Of a DNA stretch of 64,000 bases, positions 2,626-42,720 are shown in pieces. Each line of letters begins with the position of its first letter. Within the stretch, counting starts at the first letter, position 1. The DNA lies in NCBI GenBank assembly GCA_028826165.1, contig JAPDFW010000145.1, positions 43,931-107,930 of the forward strand, in the 5' to 3' direction. The translations under genes and the position numbers were made by a program. Source of the DNA: Anaeramoeba ignava BMAN. Lineage: Eukaryota; Protista; Anaeramoebae. The notes under the pieces were generated by a model. The model worked only from the letters and a program-made list of their open reading frames with translations. It made no database searches and had not been told where the DNA came from.

Positions 2626-3400
2626 ATATTTTTAATTGTAATTTATTTTATTTTCATTTTATTTTGTGTGTAAATGAATTTTGAAAAATCAAAAATAAAA
2701 TTAATAAAATAAAAATAAATTTTGAAAATAATAATTGAATTATTAATAAAATAAAAATATTAGAATTAATTAATTAATTAATTATAAATGAAAATTTATT
2801 ATTATTAATTATTAAAATAAATAAATTTGAAATGAAAAATAATAAATAAAAATGAATATTAATTATATTATATAAATATAATGAATGAATATATAATTAA
2901 TAAATATATAATAATAAATATCAATTCAAAAATATATCTAATATAAAATGTTTAAAAATAAAAATAAATTTTTAAAAGTATAAATCAAAATAAATAATAT
3001 TTTTTTTATCAACTTAATTTCAATTTATATAAATATAAATCAAAAATAAAAAAAATCAAATTTTATTCTAATTTATATATTTTAAACATTTTTCAATAAT
3101 AAATATTAAATCAAAATATATATTCAAAATTAATATAATAATGAAATCAAATTTATTATCAATATTATATTAATAAATAATATAATAAATATAATATAAG
3201 AATTAATAAATATATTAATAAAAATATATTTTATTAAATATTCTTTTTGGATTTGATTTTTATTTTGTAATTCTTTTTATATTTTTAGAATAATTATTTA
3301 TTTATTTTCATTTATTATTTTATTCAAAATTTCATTTTAATTTCATTTACAATTTAATTTTATTTTTAAATATAATTTAATTTCATTTTCATTTTCAATT
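2626..3400 (+). repeat. Core module C (representative copy, ~780 bp)
   Basis: AATATTTTTAATTGTAATT...GTGTGTAAATG...AAAAGTATAAATC...TTTGGATTTG... is near-identical across the window. Confidence 0.9.
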
Positions 3401-4365
3401 TGATTTTAATTTGAATTTAATTTGGATTTGATTTGATTTAAATTTGAATTTAATTTGAATTTAATTTGATTTGAATTTGAATTTAATTTAATTTGAATTT
3501 GATTTTGATTTGAATTTAATTTGAATTTAATTTGAATTTAATTTGAATTTTGAATTTGATTTGAATTTAAATTTGAATTTGAATTTTTGAATTTGATTTG
3601 AATTTGAATTTGAATTTGAATTTGAATTTGAATTTGATTTGGAATTTAATTTGAATTTGATTGGAATTAAATTTGAATTTAATTTTGATTTTTAATTTTG
3701 AATTTGATTTTGAATTTGATTTGAATTTGATTTGAAATTTAATTTGAATTTGAATTTAATTTAAATTTTAAATTTAAAATTTAATTAATTAAATTAATTT
3801 TAATTTAAAATTTCAATTTAAAATTAATTTTGATTTTGAATTTTCAATTTAATTTAAATTTTAATTTTTGAATTCAATTTACAATTTATTAATTTAATTA
3901 ATTTCAATTTACAATTAAATTTTAAATTAAAATTTCAATTTACAATTAAATTTTAAAAATTTAATTTTGATTTAAATTTACAATTTCAATTTACAATTTA
4001 AATTAAATTTAAATTTGAATTTGATTTGAATTAAAATTTAAATTTAAATTAAATTTAATTTTAATTTTTACAATTAATTTAAATTTAAATTTTAAATTAA
4101 TTTAATTAATTAATTTGAATTAAATTTAATTCAATTTAAATTTAAATTTTAATTTAAATTAAATTTGAATTTAATTTTAATTTGAATTAAATTAAATTAA
4201 ATCAAATAATTCAATTTTAATTAAATTTATTTAAATTTGATTTGAATTAAATTTAAATTTTCAATTTAGATTAAAATCAACTTTTACATAAAAATAAATA
4301 AACACAAAAATCAATCAATATTCATTTCTGATTTTTATTTTAAATTTTCAATTATTTTTATTTTG

Positions 4366-5305
4366 AATTCAATTTACAATTAAATTAAATTCAATTTAAT
4401 TAAATTACATTCAATTTACAATTAAATTACATTCAATTTACAATTAAATTCATTCAATTTACAATTAAATTACATTCAATTTACAATTAAATTAAATAAA
4501 TAATTCAATTTTTAAATTAAATTACATTCAATTACAATTAAATTAAATTTACAATTAAAAATTCATTCAATTTACAATTAAATTAAATAAATAAATTCAA
4601 TTTTACAATTAAATTAAATAAATTAAAATTCAATTTACAATTAAATTAAATTAATAAATTCAATTTACAATTAAATTTAATTTTAATAAATAATTCAATT
4701 TACAATTAAATTTACAATTAAATTTACAATTAAATTAAATTTACTGATTAAATTAAATTCAATTTACAATTAAATTACATTCAATTTACAATTAAATTAA
4801 ATTCAATTTACAATTAAATTAAATTAAATTCAATTTAATTAAATTAAATTACATTCAATTTACAATTAAATTACATTCAATTTACAATTAAATAAATTCA
4901 ATTTACAATTAAATAAATTCAATTTACAATTAAATAAATTCAATTTACAATTAAATAAATTCAATTTACAATTAAATTAAATAAATTCAATTTACAATTA
5001 AATTAAATAAATTCAATTTACAATTAAATTAAATAAATTCAATTTACAATTAAATTAAAATAATTCAATTTACAATTAAATCAATAATTAATTAATTCAA
5101 TTTACAATTAAATTAAATAAATTCAATTTACAATTAAATTCAATTTACAATTAAATTAAATAATTCAATTTACAATTAAATTAAATAAATATAATTCAAT
5201 TTACAATTAAATTAAATAAATAAATTCAATTTACAATTAAATTAAATAAATAAATTCAATTTACAATTAAATTAAATATATTCAATTTACAATTAAATTA
5301 ATAAT
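4366..5305 (+). repeat. Minisatellite A array
   Basis: TTCAATTTACAATTAAAT tandem units between linker H and module B. Confidence 0.9.
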
Positions 5306-6615
5306 TTTACATTTTGTTTTCATTTTATTTATTTATCAATAAAACGAATTTATGTTCAAACACTTATTTTTCAATTTTATTTGATTTTTATTTGATTTTC
5401 ATTGATTTATTTTGATTTTCAATTATTTTAAATTAAAACAGAACAAAAAGTAAATCAATATTGAATTAAGTTATTTTATTATATTTTTTATTCGATTTAA
5501 TATAAAACAATTATTTCATTCCAATTGTAAAACAAAATTGAAGTATGTTTTGAATTAATTTACAATATAATTCCATTTAATTTATATTTATTTCAATTCA
5601 AATTTATGTTCAATTTTAATTATAGTTAATTTATAAAGGAAATAAAAAGTAAATTAAAATTGGGTTGGGTTGAAGGGGCATAAGGGGATTAATAATAATT
5701 TATTCATAATTTATTCATAATTTAATTTATTTTTTATTTTTATTTTTAATTTATGTTCTTAATTTTGAAATTTATTTTTATATTTGATATATATATTTTT
5801 AGTATTTTGTAAATTAAAATATTTATAAATAAATATTTATTTTAATTTATTTTAATTTTAATTTAATTTAATTTTGTTTTTTATTAATTTAGAATTAATA
5901 ATCAATTTTTAAAATATAATATATATTTTATCTTCTTTTTTTTCTTCTTCTATTTATTTATTTATTTATTTATTTATTTGCAATTTCATTTTCAATTTCA
6001 ATTTAATTTTCATTTTCATTTTACAATTTAATTTCTATTTTCATTTTAATTTTCAATTTAGTTTAATTTTAATTCAATTTAATTCATATTTTTATATTTT
6101 ATAAATTAAATAAAATATTTTTAATTGTAATTTATTTTATTTTCATTTTATTTTATGTGTAAATGAATTTTGAAAAATCAAAAATAAAATTAATAAAATA
6201 AATAAAAATAAATTTTGAAAATAATAATTGAATTATTAATAAAATAAAAATATTAAAATTAATTAATTAATTAATTATAAATCAAAATTTATTATTATTA
6301 ATTATTAAAATAAATAAATTTGAAATGAAAAATAATAAATAAAAATGAATATTAATTATATTATATAAATATAATAAATGAATATATAATTAATAAATAT
6401 ATAATAATAAATATCAATTCAAAATATATGTAGTATAAAATGTTTAAAAAATAAAAATAAATTTTTAAAAGTATAAATCAAAATAAATAATATTTTTTTT
6501 ATCAACTTAATTTCAATTTATATAAATATAAATCAAAAAAAAAAAATAAAAAAAAAATCAAATTTTATCCTCGAAAAATTGAAACAATAAAATTTTATTT
6601 TTCAAAAATTTAATT

Positions 6616-6710
6616 AAAGACCCGGAAAAATAAAATTTCATTTTTATTGACGGGGGCGAATTTATTTTCTGCCATTTGGGGAAAATAAAATTTTATTTTT
6701 CCAGGTCTTT
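6616..6710. repeat. Left subterminal inverted repeat of the YR element (29-bp arms, 27/29)
   Basis: AAAGACCCGGAAAAATAAAATTTCATTTT (6616-6644) versus AAAATAAAATTTTATTTTTCCAGGTCTTT (6682-6710). Confidence 0.85.
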
Positions 6711-6823
6711 TTCCCCTTTTTAAAATTGAAATTTCTCCTTTTTATTTCAAAATAAAATGATATTTGAGAAATTTGGTTTTTTATTGAAAAGTGAGTAAAT
6801 TCCAAAAAATCCTAAAAAAAACC

Positions 6824-6939
6824 ATGAAGAAAATGAAAATGAAGAAAATGAAAATGAAGAAAATGAAAATGAAGAAAATGAAAATGAAGAAAATGAAAAT
6901 GAAGAAAATGAAAATGAAGAAAATGAAGAAAATGAAAAT
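6824..6939. repeat. 15-bp minisatellite (ATGAAGAAAATGAAA)n inside the YR element, downstream of the stop codon
   Basis: Directly visible, about 7-8 units. Confidence 0.9.
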
Positions 6940-6982
6940 CAGTAAAAATCCAAGAATGAGATCCCAAGCATTCAACCTACTG

Positions 6983-8173
6983 TTACTTCTTTTCATCAGG
7001 GTTCAAGAATGTTGATTTCCAAGTTGTTGCCATGTCTTTCAATGATCTCTTTCGGTCGTGTACTCCAATGTTGATTGATATAATCGAGTTTGAGGGATTT
7101 CCAATTGAGATCCCATTGGGAAATAAAAGTGGAAGGTTTTGGTTTGAGTTGTTCTCTTTTTGATCTAATTTAAGCTGCAATGCATTATCAATTGCTTTTT
7201 CTTTCTCTAAACAAACTCTTTTATATAATTGGAGAGATGATTCTGATTTATGCCCACTTTTTAATTTCATAATTTCTTGATCTTGGATCCCTTGGTTGTA
7301 TAGCCTCGATACACAAGTTACACGAAAGGAATGTAGACCAATTTTCTTATTAATATTAACTTTTTTGCATAGCTCTTGTAAATGTCTTCTCAATGTAGGT
7401 GCTTTAATTGCTTGGTTTGTAAGGGGATTTCCTGTAAAGTTTTTCTTTTTGAATGATCTAAAAAGCCGATTGTCTGGATTCGTGGGTAACTCTGATCGAA
7501 ATTTCCAATACTTGCTCAAAATTAAATATGGATCTTTCGGTGAATCTGAAAAAGGAAATAGTTTGACTGTTTTTGGTTCAAAGTTAGTCACTCCAATTGT
7601 TGCCTTATTGTTTTTGCATTCACCTTGTACATACTCTATAAAATCTTGACCATCAATGTGCCCAAAATGAATTTGTGTCAATGTCAGATCTGCGATCTCT
7701 TGTCCTCTCAAACAAAAATGGATTCCAACTACCATCACCGTTGCAATTGTCAAATGTTTTGGATTTTCTAACCTTAGATATTCCATCAATTTAGTTTGTT
7801 CAGCTTCTTTCAAATCTTGATAATGCGAAGTAAAACAGTTTCCAGCTGCAATAATTTCTTTTAACCGGTTTTCTACGGTGTTCTTGATGTCCTCAAATTC
7901 AGAATTTTTTAAATCTACGCTAATTAATTTCTTTTGATTCAAATACGATAAAAGGTTTGAGCAATAGGACCGATAAGTTTTAAGTTTGTATTCCTTTCCG
8001 TTACTCCTTTTTAATTGAATAAAAAATCGACAGATGGTGTCTTTGAGATCTATTTCTTCGAAAGTAACATTCTCAGCTTTCAAAAATCTTTCCCATTTCT
8101 TTCCCATAACAGAAATCGATTTTTGTGTATTTAAAGGGATTTTTTTTTTTTTGTACTCCTCAACAGATGTCAT
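6983..8173 (-). CDS. Tyrosine recombinase, Crypton-like (phage-integrase fold), 396 aa, intronless
   Basis: Catalytic residues are in canonical order: R (FCLRGQEI), K (CKNN), HxxR (GLHSFRVT), H (SGHKS), Y (LQLYKR). The N-terminal region (CRFFIQLKRSNGKEYKLKTYRSY) resembles Crypton-type YRs. It is the only long complex ORF in the window. Confidence 0.93.
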   Translation of the reverse strand: MTSVEEYKKKKIPLNTQKSISVMGKKWERFLKAENVTFEEIDLKDTICRFFIQLKRSNGKEYKLKTYRSYCSNLLSYLNQKKLISVDLKNSEFEDIKNTVENRLKEIIAAGNCFTSHYQDLKEAEQTKLMEYLRLENPKHLTIATVMVVGIHFCLRGQEIADLTLTQIHFGHIDGQDFIEYVQGECKNNKATIGVTNFEPKTVKLFPFSDSPKDPYLILSKYWKFRSELPTNPDNRLFRSFKKKNFTGNPLTNQAIKAPTLRRHLQELCKKVNINKKIGLHSFRVTCVSRLYNQGIQDQEIMKLKSGHKSESSLQLYKRVCLEKEKAIDNALQLKLDQKENNSNQNLPLLFPNGISIGNPSNSIISINIGVHDRKRSLKDMATTWKSTFLNPDEKK

Positions 8174-8342
8174 AAGAGACGAATGAAAATCAAAAAAAAA
8201 TTTTTTTTTTCTTTTGAATCCCGAATTAGAAAAATTTTTTCTTAAATAGTTTTCTCTTAAATTTTTTTTTCTCCTTTTTTCGATTTTTTTCTCCTTTTAT
8301 TTTTTTTTTATTTTTTTTTTATTTTTTATTTTTTGGATCAGA

Positions 8343-8542
8343 TCAATTTTTTGAGGATAAAAATACTATTTGCCCTCATTCGGAAAAATAAAATCATTTT
8401 TGAATCTCGATTTTTAGCTAAACCATCCGCTCGCCAGGGCTCGCTAAGATAATTTTGGCTCGTAAACGAGCCACCGCTAAAAATCTCGATTGCAAAAATA
8501 AAATTTTATTTTTCCAAATTTGAGCAAATAGTTTATCTTTAT
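8343..8542. other. Right-end fold-back of the YR element with an internal region complementary to both element ends
   Basis: 8343-8356 is the reverse complement of 6569-6582 (13/14). 8357-8361 ATAAA complements the TTTAT core. Further pairings: 8365-8373/8524-8532 (9/9), 8382-8394/8503-8515 (13/13), 8396-8402/8493-8499 (7/7), 8403-8418/8476-8491 (14/16). Confidence 0.85.
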
Positions 8543-8899
8543 TCTAATTTATATATTTTAAACATTTTTCAATAATAAATATTAAATCAAAATATATATT
8601 CAAAATTAATATAATAATGGAATCAAATTTATTATCAATATTATATTAATAAATAATATAATAAATATAATATCAGAATAATAAATATATTAATAAAAAT
8701 ATATTTTATTAAATATTCTTTTTTTTGGATTTGATTTTTATTTTGTAATTCTTTTTATATTTTTTAGAATAATTATTTATTTCTTTTCATTTATTATTTT
8801 ATTCAAAATTTCATTTTTAATTTCATTTACAATTTAATTTATTTTAAATATAATTTAATTTCATTTCCATTTTCATTTTCAATTTCATTTTTTCATATT

Positions 8900-10018
8900 T
8901 ATATATATAATTAATCAATTTAATTTCCAATTTATTTATAATTTATATTCAAAAATAAAAATCAATTTCTCTCTATATATAAAATATATAAATTTAATTT
9001 TTCAATTTATTTATAATTTAAATTCAAAATAAAAATCAATTTATTTATATATATTATAAACAAATTTATAATAAAATACTTAATTAATTTAATTCCCAAT
9101 TTATTTATAATTTATATTCAAAAATAAAAATCAATTTCTCTCTATATATAAAATATATAAATTTATTTTTCAATTTATTTATAATTTAAATTAAAAATAA
9201 AAATCAATTTATTTATATATATTATAAACAAATTTATAATAAAATAATTAATTAATTTAATTCCCAATTTATTTATAATTTATATTCAAAATAAAAAATC
9301 AATTTCTCTCTATATATAAAATATATAAATTTATTTTTCAATTTATTTATAATTTATATTCAAAATAAAAATCAATTTATTTATATATATTATAAAACAA
9401 ATTTATAACAAAATACTTAATTAATTTAATTTCCAATTTATTTATAATTTATATTCAAAAATAAAAATCAATTTCTCTCTATATATAAAAAGTATATAAA
9501 TTTATTTTTAATTTATTTCAATTCAAATTAAAAATAAAAATCAATTTATTTATATATATTATAAACAAATTTATAACAAAATAATTTATTAATTTAATTT
9601 TCAATTTATTTATAATTTATATTCAAAAATAAAAATCAATTTCTCTCTATATATAAAATATATAAATTTATTTTTCAATTTATTTATAATTTAAATTAAA
9701 AATAAAAATCAATTTATTTATATATATTATAAACAAATTTATAACAAAATAATTAATTAATTTAATTTCCAATTTATTTATAATTTATATTCAAAAAATA
9801 AAAAATCAATTTCTCTCTATATATAAAATATATAAATTTATTTTTCAATTTATTTATAATTTAAATTAAAAATAAAAAAAATCAATTTATTTATATATAT
9901 TATAAACAAATTTATAATAAAATAATTAATCAATTTAATTTCCAATTTATTTATAATTTATATTCAAAAAATAAAAAATCAATTTCTCTCTATATATAAA
10001 ATATATAAATTTATTTTT
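8900..10018 (+). repeat. Satellite F: ~169-bp tandem unit, 7 anchors
   Basis: CTCTCTATATATA anchor at about 8969, 9138, 9306, 9475, 9643, 9813 and 9986. Confidence 0.9.
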
Positions 10019-10377
10019 GAATTTGATTTGAATTTGATTTGAATTTGATTTGAATTAAATTTGAATTTGATTTGAATTTAATTTGAATTTGATTTGAATT
10101 TAATTTTAATTTAATTTGAATTTGAATTTAATTTGAATTTAATTTGAATTTGATTTTGAATTTGAATTTGAATTTGATTTGAATTTGATTTGAATTTGAT
10201 TTGAATTTGAATTTAATTTGAATTTAATTTTAATTTAATTTGAATTTGAATTTAATTTTAATTTAATTTGAATTTGAATTTAATTTGAATTTAATTTAAT
10301 TTGAATTTAATTTGATTTGAATTTAAAACAAATAAATAAATATTTATTTCTTTTGGTTATTTTTCTTTTTTCTTTTT

Positions 10378-11905
10378 TCATTTTCAATTACATTTTCAAT
10401 TACATTTTCAATTACATTTTCAATTACATTTTCAATTACATTTTCAATTACATTTTCAATTTCATTTTCAATTACATTTTCAATTTCAATTTCAATTACA
10501 TTTTCAATTACATTTTCAATTACATTTTCAATTACATTAAAAAATTTTCAATTACATTTTCAATTACATTTTCAATTACATTTTCAATTTCATTTTCAAT
10601 TACATTTTCAATTAATTCATTTCCATTTTCAATTACAATTTTTTACATTTTCAATTACATTTTCAATTACATTTTCAATTACATTTTCAATTACATTTTC
10701 AATTTCATTTTCAATTACATTTTCATTTCATTTCATTTTCAATTACATTTTCAATTACATTTTCATTTCATTTTCAATTACATTTTCAATTACATTTTCA
10801 ATTACATTTTCAATTACATTTTCAATTACATTTTCAATTACATTTTCAATTACATTTTCATTTCATTTCATTTTAATTTTAATTTTCAATTTATTTTTTG
10901 AATTTAATTTTCAATTACATTTTCAATTACATTTTCAATTACATTTTCAATTATTTTCAATTTATTTTCAATTTCATTTTCAATTCATTTTCAATTACAT
11001 TTTCAATTACATTTTCAATTACATTTTCAATTACATTTTCAATTACATTTTCAATTACATTTTCAATTACATTTTCAATTACATTTTCAATTACATTTTC
11101 AATTACATTTTCAATTACATTTTCAATTTTGAATTTTCAATTTAATTTTTCATTTAATTTGAATTTTCAATTACATTTTCAATTTCATTTTCAATTACAT
11201 TTTCAATTTACATTTTCAATTACATTTTCAATTACATTTTCAATTACATTTTTCAATTTTCATTTTTCATTTTCAATTACATTTTCAATTACATTTTCAA
11301 TTACATTTTCAATTACATTTTCAATTTCATTTTCAATTACATTTTCAATTACATTTTCAATTACATTTTCAATTACATTTTCAATTACATTTTCAATTAC
11401 ATTTTCAATTACATTTTCAATTACATTTTCAATTACATTTTCAATTACATTTTCAATTACATTTTCAATTACATTTTCAATTACATTTTCAATTACATTT
11501 TCAATTACATTTTCAATTTCATTTCATTTCATTTCATTTTCAATTTCATTTTCATTTCATTTTCAATTACATTTTCAATTTCATTTTCAATTACATTTTC
11601 ATTTCATTTTCATTACATTTTCAATTACATTTTCAATTACATTTTCAATTTCATTTTCAATTACATTTTCAATTACATTTTCAATTTCATTTTCAATTAC
11701 ATTTTCAATTACATTTTCAATTACATTTTCAATTACATTTTCAATTACATTTTCAATTACATTTTCAATTACATTTTCAATTACATTTTCAATTTCATTT
11801 TCAATTACATTTTCAATTACATTTTCAATTACATTTTCAATTACATTTTCAATTTAATTTTCAATTACATTTTCAATTACATTTTCAATTTCATTTTCAA
11901 TTTCA
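10378..11905 (+). repeat. 12-bp satellite E (TTTTCAATTACA)n
   Basis: Directly visible; preceded by a fixed leader AAAACAAATAAATATTTATTTCTTTTGGTTATTTTTC. Confidence 0.93.
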
Positions 11906-13079
11906 ATTTATATTTTATAAACAAATAAATAAAATATTTTTAATTGTAATTTATTTTATTTTCATTTTATTTTGTGTGTAAATGAATTTTGAAAAAAATC
12001 AAAAAAAATAAAATTAATAAAATAAAAAATAAATTTTGAAAATAATAATTGAATTATTAATAAAATAAAAAATATTAAAATTAATTAATTAATTAATTAT
12101 AAATGAAAATTTATTATTATTAATTATTAAAATAAATAAATTTGAAATGAAAAATAATAAATAAAAATGAATATTAATTATATTATATAAATATAAATGA
12201 ATGAATATATAATTAATAAATATATAATAATAAATATCAATTCAAAATATATGTAATATAAAATGTTTAAAAATAAAAATAAATTTTTAAAAGTATAAAT
12301 CAAAATAAATAATATTTTTATCAACTTTATTTCAATTTATATAAATATAAATCAAAAAAAATAAAAAAAAATCAAATTTTATTCTAACTTATATATTTTA
12401 AACATTTTTCAATAATAAATATTAAATCAAAATATATATTCAAAATTAATATAATAATGAAATCAAATTTATTATCAATATTATATTAATAAATAATATA
12501 ATATCAAATAATAAATATATTAATAAAAAATATATTAATAAAAATATATTTTATTAAATATTCTTTTTGGATTTGATTTTTATTTTGTAATTCTTTTTAT
12601 ATTTTTTTAGAATAATTATTTATTTATTTTCATTTATTATTTTATTTAAAATTTCATTTTAATTTCATTTACAATTTAATTTATTTTAAATATAATTTAA
12701 TTTCATTTTCAATTCATTTTCAATTTCATTTTAATTTAGATTTGAATTTAATTTAGATTTGAATTTGATTTGATTTGATTTGATTTGAATTTGATTTGAT
12801 TTTGATTTTTATTTTGAATTTAATTTGAATTTAATTTGAATTTAATTTGAATTTGAATTTGAAATTGATTTGAATTTAATTTGAATTTAAATTTGAATTT
12901 AATTTGAATTTGATTTGAATTTAATTTGAATTTGAATTTTAATTTTAATTTTAATTTTAATTTGAATTTGATTTGAATTTGAATTTTAATTTTAATTTGA
13001 ATTTGATTTGAATTTGAATTTAAATATAATTTAATTTCATTTTCAATTTCATTTTTATTTTCATTTTCATTTAGATTTG

Positions 13080-41835: not shown

Positions 41836-42340
41836 TTCAATTTCAATTTATATTTTGTAAACAATTTAATAAATATTTTTAATTGTAATTTATTTTATTT
41901 TCATTTTATTTTGTGTGTAAATAAATTTTGAAAAAATCAAAAAAAATAAAATTAATAAAATAAATAAAAAATAAATTTTGAAAATAATAATTGAATTATT
42001 AATAAAATAAAAAATATTAGAATTAATTAATTAATTAATTATAAATGAAAATTTATTATTATTAATTATTAAAATAAATAAATTTGAAATGGAAAATAAT
42101 AAATAAAAAATGAATATTAATTATATTATATAAATATAATAAATGAATATATAATTAATAAATATATAATAATAAATATCAATTCAAAATATATATAATG
42201 TAAAATGTTTAAAAAATAAAAATAAATTTTTAAAAGTATAAATCAAAATAAATAATATTTTTTTTATCAACTTTATTTCAATTTATATAAATATAAATCA
42301 AAAAAAAAATAAAAAAAAATCAAATTTTATTCTAATTTAT

Positions 42341-42720
42341 AAAAGAAAAAAAAAGAAAAAAATAAAAATAAAAAAAATAAATAAATAAAAGTGAATAGTG
42401 CCCGCCTCCCTCCCCGTTAACACCGACTTACAGCCGTTGTTACCAACCCTCAGGGTTGTCAAACCTCGATATTCGAAATGTCTTGTATGTTGTTTTGGAA
42501 TTACAAACTGAGATTTGTCAAACAAGTCTTTCATATGGATTTATTTATTTGTTTATTCGAAAGGAATCCTTTCTCATTAAATAAATCCTATTCGGATTTG
42601 TTTGACAAATCTCAGTTTGTCAAAACACATACTCGCTTTCGCTCGGTTGCTCCTCTTACCCCCCTTTCACTAGTTCTCCCCCCGTTCCCCTCACTAATAT
42701 GTGTTTGTAAGTGATATACT
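42341..42720. other. GC-rich structured non-coding island of unknown class (candidate ncRNA or non-autonomous mobile element)
   Basis: The core module breaks after TTCTAATTTAT (42340). An A-rich tract follows, then unique GC-rich sequence with a perfect 23-bp inverted repeat (42503-42525 / 42598-42620) and smaller hairpins. The right boundary is not sharp. Confidence 0.6.
42485..42632. repeat. Long imperfect hairpin (~148 nt) with a perfect 23-bp stem
   Basis: ACAAACTGAGATTTGTCAAACAA / TTGTTTGACAAATCTCAGTTTGT; outer GTATGTTGTTTTG / CAAAACACATAC; inner GGATTTATTTA / TAAATAAATCC; apical GAAAGG-AAT-CCTTTC. Confidence 0.9.

Follow-up and report, generated by a model that had tools for sequence, protein, structure and literature searches.

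The locus analysed here raises the question of why a transposon whose only gene codes for a recombinase carries, close to one of its ends, an inverted copy of the junction formed when its two ends are joined. It was found in the window, i.e. the whole 64,000-nucleotide stretch of Anaeramoeba ignava DNA that was analysed. The preliminary description of this stretch had proposed a tyrosine-recombinase transposon without reverse transcriptase (RT), and this identification held. Positions 6569-8537 of the window are an intact, recently mobile Crypton-type transposon of A. ignava, complete at 1,969 bp (named F1 below), with one open reading frame (ORF) bearing the catalytic set R..K..HxxR..H..Y. 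The element is apparently active.

Both ends of F1 were fixed, independently of the fold-back claim discussed below, by two empty target sites within the window. In the filled site the left junction reads ..CAAAT-TTTAT-CCTCG.., where the 5-bp crossover core TTTAT has its left copy at 6564-6568 (plus strand) and CCTCG starts at 6569. The right junction reads ..GTTTATC-TTTAT-TCTAATT.., where the final C of GTTTATC is position 8537 and the right core copy occupies 8538-8542 on the same strand. Both empty paralogous repeat units, with their targets at 3062-3066 and 12378-12382 (plus strand), read CAAATTTTATTCTAA with a single TTTAT. A second copy of F1 with the same ends (G000:C107:133560-135537, the C107 copy below) is 97% identical and lies inside a perfect (AATTTT)n satellite. 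The two copies differ little, namely by one substitution, homopolymer lengths and a 21-nt step in a 15-nt microsatellite, (GAAGAAAATGAAAAT)n, which occupies 6821-6940 in the 3' non-coding part and is the longer one in the C107 copy. The left junction of the C107 insertion has TTTAT, but the right junction has TTAAT, which is the satellite's own sequence. These unlike cores indicate that the F1 crossover spans the 5-bp core and that a mismatch is tolerated; integration of F1 is a crossover within the TTTAT core.

The DNA surrounding F1 (window 3000-13000) is an A/T-rich satellite mosaic with units such as ttcaattaca and aatttgaatttgattt and a ~170-bp repeat at 8900-10000. These satellites form larger repeat units, which recur at ~3060, 6560, 12385 and 42325. 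At 42325-42720 a ~330-bp GC-rich island comes after a further unit of this local repeat (tcaaattttattctaattta); the island contains a long palindrome, tttgtcaaac...gtttgacaaa, and CTCGCTTTCGCTCG, and its sequence is unrelated to the Crypton. Many GAAAATGAA repeats similar to the microsatellite at 6821-6940 are spread over the whole genome, and they dominate the results when the element is used for DNA searches.

The gene of F1 lies on the minus strand. Its ORF of 396 aa (8173 to 6983) is, over the 1,969 bp, the one coding-strand ORF that reaches 80 aa, and is 94-99% identical to the A. ignava hypothetical protein M0811_11767. Phage_integrase (PF00589, 5e-11) was the only Pfam match of the F1 protein, and alignments and translation showed that the catalytic set is complete (CLRGQE..K..HSFR..GHKS..LQLY). 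The Pfam domain DUF3504 was not detected in it, though it is present in metagenomic relatives of F1. No RT or other transposase was found within the defined ends. There are no long or ordinary terminal inverted repeats either, and the ends share just a ~30-bp A/T-rich palindromic motif. A search of the A. ignava assembly for the circle junction, allowing up to 3 mismatches, gave no match.

Cryptons were reportedly described as tyrosine-recombinase DNA transposons by Goodwin et al. in 2003. They are so described by Kojima & Jurka 2011 (PMC3212892), and only short (4-6 bp) terminal direct repeats have been described for them (PMC3212892, PMC13465315). F1 agrees with Cryptons in its single recombinase gene with a complete catalytic set, in lacking RT and terminal inverted repeats, and in a 5-bp direct end repeat that serves as the crossover core. 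Both also accept a near-identical target (TTTAT/TTAAT here, CACCG/CAYCG in Chlamydomonas; PMC9977147), and the protein clusters nearest to F1 are Crypton-type. F1 differs from them in having an internal inverted junction copy inside a conserved polar palindrome. By the preliminary description such a layout is not known from Cryptons, and no description of an internal inverted junction copy in a Crypton was found in the literature searched.

The inverted junction copy (J' below, the junction itself being J) lies at 8343-8373 on the plus strand, exactly where it had been claimed. It consists of the left-end complement, ATAAA and the right-end complement. When aligned to the reverse complement of the joined F1 ends, it matched at 29 of 31 positions with one 2-nt gap, J' being the shorter of the two. 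The local alignment score was 45, against 32 for the best of 500 element shuffles and at most 22 for the rest of the window. The C107 copy has the same sequence throughout 8343-8373. Taken by itself, the match to the far left end pairs 8343-8356 with the left terminal 14 nt, CCTCGAAAAATTGA (6569-6582, plus strand). It has 13 of 14 matches and was equalled by 1 of 500 shuffles, and it is convincing because it directly adjoins the copied core.

J' is at the base of an imperfect palindrome with ~80 bp per arm. Arm A (8343-8418, plus strand; alignment and fold) is complementary to arm B (8476-8537, plus strand; alignment), which ends as the right terminus of the element, ..GCAAATAGTTTATC. The complementarity extends inward to 8418/8476, as described before, with 67 matches and 5 indel columns among 81 aligned columns. 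Two finer points of the earlier account were likewise confirmed: a 2-nt bulge is found a few bases from the core in the F1 fold, and the last 14 bp of the stem are present only once the ends are joined. The stem base of the module is therefore complete only with both element ends together.

Between the arms is an apex or spacer (8419-8475, plus strand). It contains the motif TCCGCTCG-N6-CTCGCTAAGATAA (8426-8452), which has only 5 sites in the 42.8-Mb genome, all of them in such elements. It also contains an inner CTCG pair (8430-8443; the expectation for CTCG-N5-8-CTCG is 0.00 per window) and a mini-hairpin, GGCTCG-TAAA-CGAGCC (8457-8472), all on the plus strand. Further out, a CTCG in arm A (8406-8409) mirrors a CTCG in arm B (8484-8487) in the same orientation. 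The fold has GA internal loops at this outer pair, which forms a CGAG-over-CGAG block on the minus strand. Taken together, the F1 recombination region is a polar fold-back module of ~200 bp, in the order J', arm A, apex, arm B, J on the CTCG strand. Circle-permuted modules gave fold z-scores of -9 to -18. At the other end of F1 there is a left subterminal hairpin at 6616-6710 (arms 6616-6644 and 6682-6710, 93% complementary). As read from the sequence, both of its mismatches are C·A on the plus strand and hence G·T on the minus strand.

The reading favoured here, with a probability of roughly 0.5, is that the fold-back module may be a site that works as folded single-stranded DNA, in the form of the CGAG strand (the minus strand of the window). 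When the CGAG strand is single-stranded the module would fold, and the resulting hairpin would be a duplex site for the recombinase. J' would be a splint for the two ends, pairing with the right end beside it and the left end far away and thereby defining and aligning both. The outer 14-24 nt of J' would pair with the far left end and so bring the two copies of the core close to each other. Site polarity would come from the bulge next to the core and from the CGAG-over-CGAG blocks.

The layout of F1 (junction copy, arm, apex, arm, junction) was also found in four further recombinase-only families of A. ignava, named F3, F2, F2b and F4. The recombinases of the five families are 26-43% identical. 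F1, F3 and F4 share ancestry and the families represent fewer than five independent lineages, each with very few copies. Junction copies were identified by locus reading and local alignment, as an exact-seed finder was too noisy in A/T-rich DNA. F3 (C61) is 1,926 bp long and its recombinase is 38% identical to that of F1. Its left end reads ..AAGAT-TTTAT followed by TGTCAAAAAA.. and its right end ..GCCCTAC followed by TTTAT-TATCT.., with five empty sites in a dispersed satellite. The F3 J' (L033 2680-2722) is the reverse complement of the F3 junction (score 60, shuffle maximum 32) and matches the far end at 22 of 23 bases. F2 (C104/C78) is ~2.0 kb long, with a recombinase 26-27% identical and ends taken from two copies, and its J' spans the junction (score 48, shuffle maximum 32). 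F2b (C82) is 2,228 bp long and ends in a satellite with a TTA repeat. Its J' scored 39 (shuffle maximum 27); the GC-rich left terminus TTGGACCCTGAAG finds its complement there in CTTCA-GGTCCAA. The ends of F4 (C60/C76/C80; 2,354 bp) were fixed through second copies; the left end was taken from the C76 copy, the C60 copy being truncated by ~30 bp there. The F4 J' match is A/T-rich and weak, and stands weakly above the cross-family background. A ~410-bp (AAT)n run is found inside F4, between the recombinase start and the module (L034:2747-3160, G000:C60).

In F2, F2b and F3, as in F1, the crossover lies in one arm of the palindrome and the stem is closed by circularisation. F1, F3 and F4 have the apex TCCRCTCG-N6-7-CTCGYTARGATAA in common, and its five occurrences in 42.8 Mb all belong to these elements. 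The apex of F2 and F2b is CTCG-N7-CTCG, with an expectation of 0.00 per 64 kb. Further CTCG-N-CTCG matches in L056, L058, L075 and L076 were dropped, as they are not within palindromes, and a match at window 42632 is part of the unrelated GC-rich island. No apex/spacer motif was found in JGI metagenome contigs. Metagenomic relatives with recombinases 27-29% identical to that of F1 come from sample ERZ25039471 and have three modules in contig L064 and one in L065. Their GGATAAC..CGAG arms are reminiscent of the GGATAA/CTCG apex motif of A. ignava; homology is not claimed, as the order of the parts differs.

The preliminary description had called the layout similar to DIRS-1's internal complementary region (ICR) and had suggested looking for covariation of the internal region with both termini. 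Such covariation was found across the families. When the internal region of each family was scored against the junctions of all families, the diagonal of the matrix was 45, 56, 28, 27 and 35, and off-diagonal scores were at most 25. The own-family scores are the highest, which shows that J' covaries with both termini of its own family. The copies are not exact. In 4 of 5 families J' is 2-5 nt shorter than the junction right beside the core. TAAAG (CGAG-strand reading) is at the core of all clear junctions, and J' is without its G.

Two inverted protein-binding sites, with no base pairing, would show the same covariation with the ends. This is the starting point of the main rival explanation, a duplex accessory site. 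Here J' and the CTCG repeats would be extra recombinase or host-factor sites in double-stranded DNA, like the arm-type sites of lambda attP, which help the complex to assemble and take its orientation on a circle that finds no more than TTTAT in its target, and no strand would fold. Shared binding specificity explains the covariation of J' with both ends equally well. The 13-mer GGAAAAATAAAAT is found seven times in the two ends of F1 and once in the other 62 kb of the window. The CTCG pairs are about one helical turn apart, and the four direct CTCG repeats could be merely duplex binding sites. The altered core spacing of J' and its missing conserved G are as expected of a site that is bound but uncut. 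However, the continuous complementarity of ~80 bp per arm exceeds the needs of binding sites.

The distribution of features between the strands bears on this point. Over 8 modules CTCG outnumbers CGAG by 31:1, and each module has its CTCG copies directly oriented at mirrored places. In F1 (8406, 8484), F3, L064 and L065, CTCG is found in both arms in direct orientation and at mirrored positions, at the expense of complementarity, so that the hairpin of the opposite strand sets CGAG against CGAG. The CGAG block (C:G, sheared G:A, A:G, G:C) is known from DNA hairpins solved by NMR (PMC10085684). A d(GNA) triloop is present at the CGAG-strand apex of F4 (TC-GCA-GA), F2b (TC-GGA-GA, twice) and F2 (CT-GTA-AG), and also in L064 (GCC-GCA-GGC) and L065. 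Most of these apices have a C:G closing pair, and a d(GNA) triloop closed in this way is a very stable DNA motif (PMC3201870, PMC13037366). F1 and F3 have six-base apices without d(GNA).

The folds themselves point in the same direction. With DNA parameters the CGAG strand had the more stable fold in 7 of 8 modules, the exception being a degenerate F4 copy, which folds better on the other strand. With RNA parameters it is favoured in all 8, by 1-23 kcal/mol. Transition mismatches in the stems, counted on the CTCG strand, are 14 A·C and 2 G·T (binomial p ~0.004), a small (16), alignment-dependent count that takes in both mismatches of the left hairpin at 6616-6710. These strand-confined features are new but indirect support for a folded single-stranded substrate, which was among the alternatives first put forward for this locus. 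A duplex accessory site does not predict that the tetranucleotide has the exact pyrimidine-GA-purine context for sheared G:A pairs. Nor does it predict the d(GNA) apex on that same CGAG strand or the excess of A·C-type over G·T-type mismatches on one strand. On balance it is a serious rival, though rather unlikely as an explanation of the module.

The strand preference could also reflect a structure at the RNA level. In that case the module would fold in the transcript, either as part of the 5' UTR (F1, F3, F4) or in antisense or read-through RNA (F2, F2b), and would regulate recombinase expression or guide the reaction. The result with RNA parameters (8/8 modules) fits such a structure, and RNA often contains G·U and tandem G·A pairs. 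The CGAG strand, i.e. the favourable one, is also the mRNA sense strand in F1, F3 and F4, and in F1 it lies upstream of the ATG. The position and strand of the module relative to the gene are nevertheless opposite in F2 and F2b, while its polarity does not vary with respect to the crossover site. J is located 3' of the CTCG-oriented apex in 5 of 5 families, whereas the gene is antisense and beside J' in F1, F3 and F4, but sense and beside J in F2 and F2b. The constant order of the module against the variable orientation of the gene shows that polarity goes with the crossover site rather than with transcription. In addition, the far-end match has no role in RNA from an integrated copy, and the d(GNA) triloop is a stability motif of DNA (PMC3201870). 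Rfam and tRNA scans of window 6500-8700 found nothing meaningful, without any Rfam match. An RNA-level structure is therefore improbable. The specific suggestion of a 5' non-coding RNA is disfavoured, with the module 5' and sense in three families and 3' with its favourable strand antisense in the other two.

If the module does act as a folded single strand, the reaction can be outlined further. Cleavage and rejoining between ATAAA and G would give a single-stranded circle with a completed hairpin, and the donor strand would be resealed. The hairpin would then recombine with a TTTAT-like target by exchange of one strand, followed by completion through replication. Copying out of one strand would also make replicative spread possible. 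One-strand exchange at this position implies that, where the cores are unlike, the element-type core should be on the left and the target-type core on the right. Unlike cores are found in the C107 insertion (TTTAT/TTAAT) and in the C76 copy of F4 (TTTAT/TTTAA). In both the element-type core is at the left end, but these cases are alignment-dependent and too few for proof (n=2).

J' could instead be a second crossover site. Two inverted copies of core and half-site are a classic inversion substrate, and recombination of J with J' would reverse the apex, or the gene body with respect to the apex, as a switch or for Flp/FRT-like amplification of a replicating circle. F1/F3/F4 and F2/F2b do have the module in opposite orientations with respect to the gene, as such an inversion would produce, and so do the two units of the metagenomic contig L064. 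A single J x J' inversion in evolution would convert the F1-type into the F2-type arrangement. A rare inversion would thus explain the flip between the family groups. Inversion or circle amplification had been one of the alternatives in the preliminary description; as a frequent event it gained no support from the genome. A single isomer was found per family (F1 2/2, F4 2/2, F2 2/2), and 7 of 7 copies in 4 families have one apex orientation within the family. The 2-5 nt indel of J' at the core and the missing conserved G should both block J x J' exchange, and the element has no replication origin or replication gene. As the function of J', a second crossover site is very improbable.

The DIRS-1 ICR was reportedly described by Cappello et al. 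in 1985. It consists of 33 + 55 nt and is essential for retrotransposition (Malicki et al. 2020, PMC7192593). As in F1, a left-end complement is followed by a right-end complement near one terminus, which amounts to an inverted circle junction, and single-stranded intermediates are documented for DIRS-1. The shared layout would fit a DIRS relic, i.e. deletion derivatives that are moved by RT acting in trans and whose internal copy rebuilds the ends from a shorter cDNA. However, F1 lacks long inverted terminal repeats, and it does not encode RT, RNase H, methyltransferase or gag. Its internal copy is imperfect (core indel), whereas the DIRS-1 ICR is reported to be exactly complementary, and the F1 copy cannot serve to rebuild cDNA. 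The relatives were checked for RT and RNase H, and in all five families (1.9-2.4 kb) the recombinase is the sole coding content. The A. ignava genome has ~20 recombinase matches (protein search) and 17 RVT_1 matches, and none of these 17 lies beside a recombinase gene and in its orientation. The nearest ESM Atlas clusters and the metagenomic relatives carry the Crypton signature (Phage_integrase/DUF3504/QRICH1), and none has RT. The insertions took place by clean, site-specific crossover, and the empty sites are precise. It is most improbable that these families are DIRS relics. The ICR has been explained only via reverse transcription, yet the same layout is present here without RT, which bears on the origin of DIRS.

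Sites that function as folded single strands are well known from bacteria. The integron recombinase IntI recombines the folded bottom strand of attC, an imperfect palindrome with its crossover near the outer edge of one arm. The last stem bases of attC are present only in the circular cassette, its strand and polarity are set by unpaired bases, and its apex is variable. In CTX-phi attP(+), two inverted sites ~100-150 nt apart fold on one strand with a mismatched centre and are recombined by XerCD; one strand is exchanged and the intermediate is resolved by replication. To our knowledge, recombination as folded single-stranded DNA is so far confined to bacteria. F1 has in common with attC the palindrome, the crossover at its edge and the stem completed by circularisation. 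It differs from attC in its eukaryotic host, in carrying the recombinase on the mobile unit itself and in having no attI platform. The arms are also far longer, and the polarity mark consists of CGAG blocks in place of single extrahelical bases. With attP(+), F1 shares two inverted recombination-site copies and, as proposed here, the folded-strand logic. CTX-phi, however, is packaged as single-stranded DNA, so that its strand source is known, and it uses host recombinases, while F1 encodes no source of single-stranded DNA.

A wider interpretation is possible but tentative. The five families may belong to a eukaryotic Crypton clade with an attC-like folded single-stranded DNA site (CGAG blocks, GNA apex, J' splint) and copy-out transposition, and the DIRS ICR may derive from a Crypton ancestor. 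If so, the ICR would have been inherited from an element in which it served the recombinase rather than reverse transcription. F1 and its relatives would also be the first eukaryotic case of the integron and CTX-phi principle. Copy gain of Cryptons despite clean excision would be accounted for as well. Movement of Cryptons has been directly observed only in Chlamydomonas mutation-accumulation lines, where active elements excise cleanly yet gain copies (PMC9977147). This combination is not explained by a simple cut-and-paste circle. A fold-back site whose stem is closed by end joining is a concrete, testable mechanism, and the strand features predict which strand is used. The module, with its mirrored CTCG, apex and junction copy, also defines the ends of Cryptons, which are hard to locate otherwise.

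Several minor observations were made at the related loci. An RT fragment with a 191-aa ORF (L033:3548-3871, G000:C61:374834-375157) is found ~700 bp outside F3, on the opposite strand and not in the element. At the same F3 locus, the gene model KAJ5076628 is 744 aa long and apparently an extended form of the 460-aa recombinase ORF. A cluster at G000:C35:483000-514000 (L036, L039, L040, L044, L057, L058), near an RT fragment and copies of the target satellite of F3, consists of degenerate recombinase fragments that have many stops and 45-76% identity to F1. This cluster is probably a transposon graveyard.

In the metagenomic contig L064 (1374-5937; ena:ERZ25039471:contig_38348) the three fold-back modules are in direct orientation, at 1374, 3652 and 5555, and are 88-100% alike. 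They alternate with two divergent recombinase genes (mutual identity 39%), of which one is sense to the modules and the other antisense. The genes resemble each other less than the modules do, and the arrangement looks like a cassette array or a series of tandem site-specific insertions.
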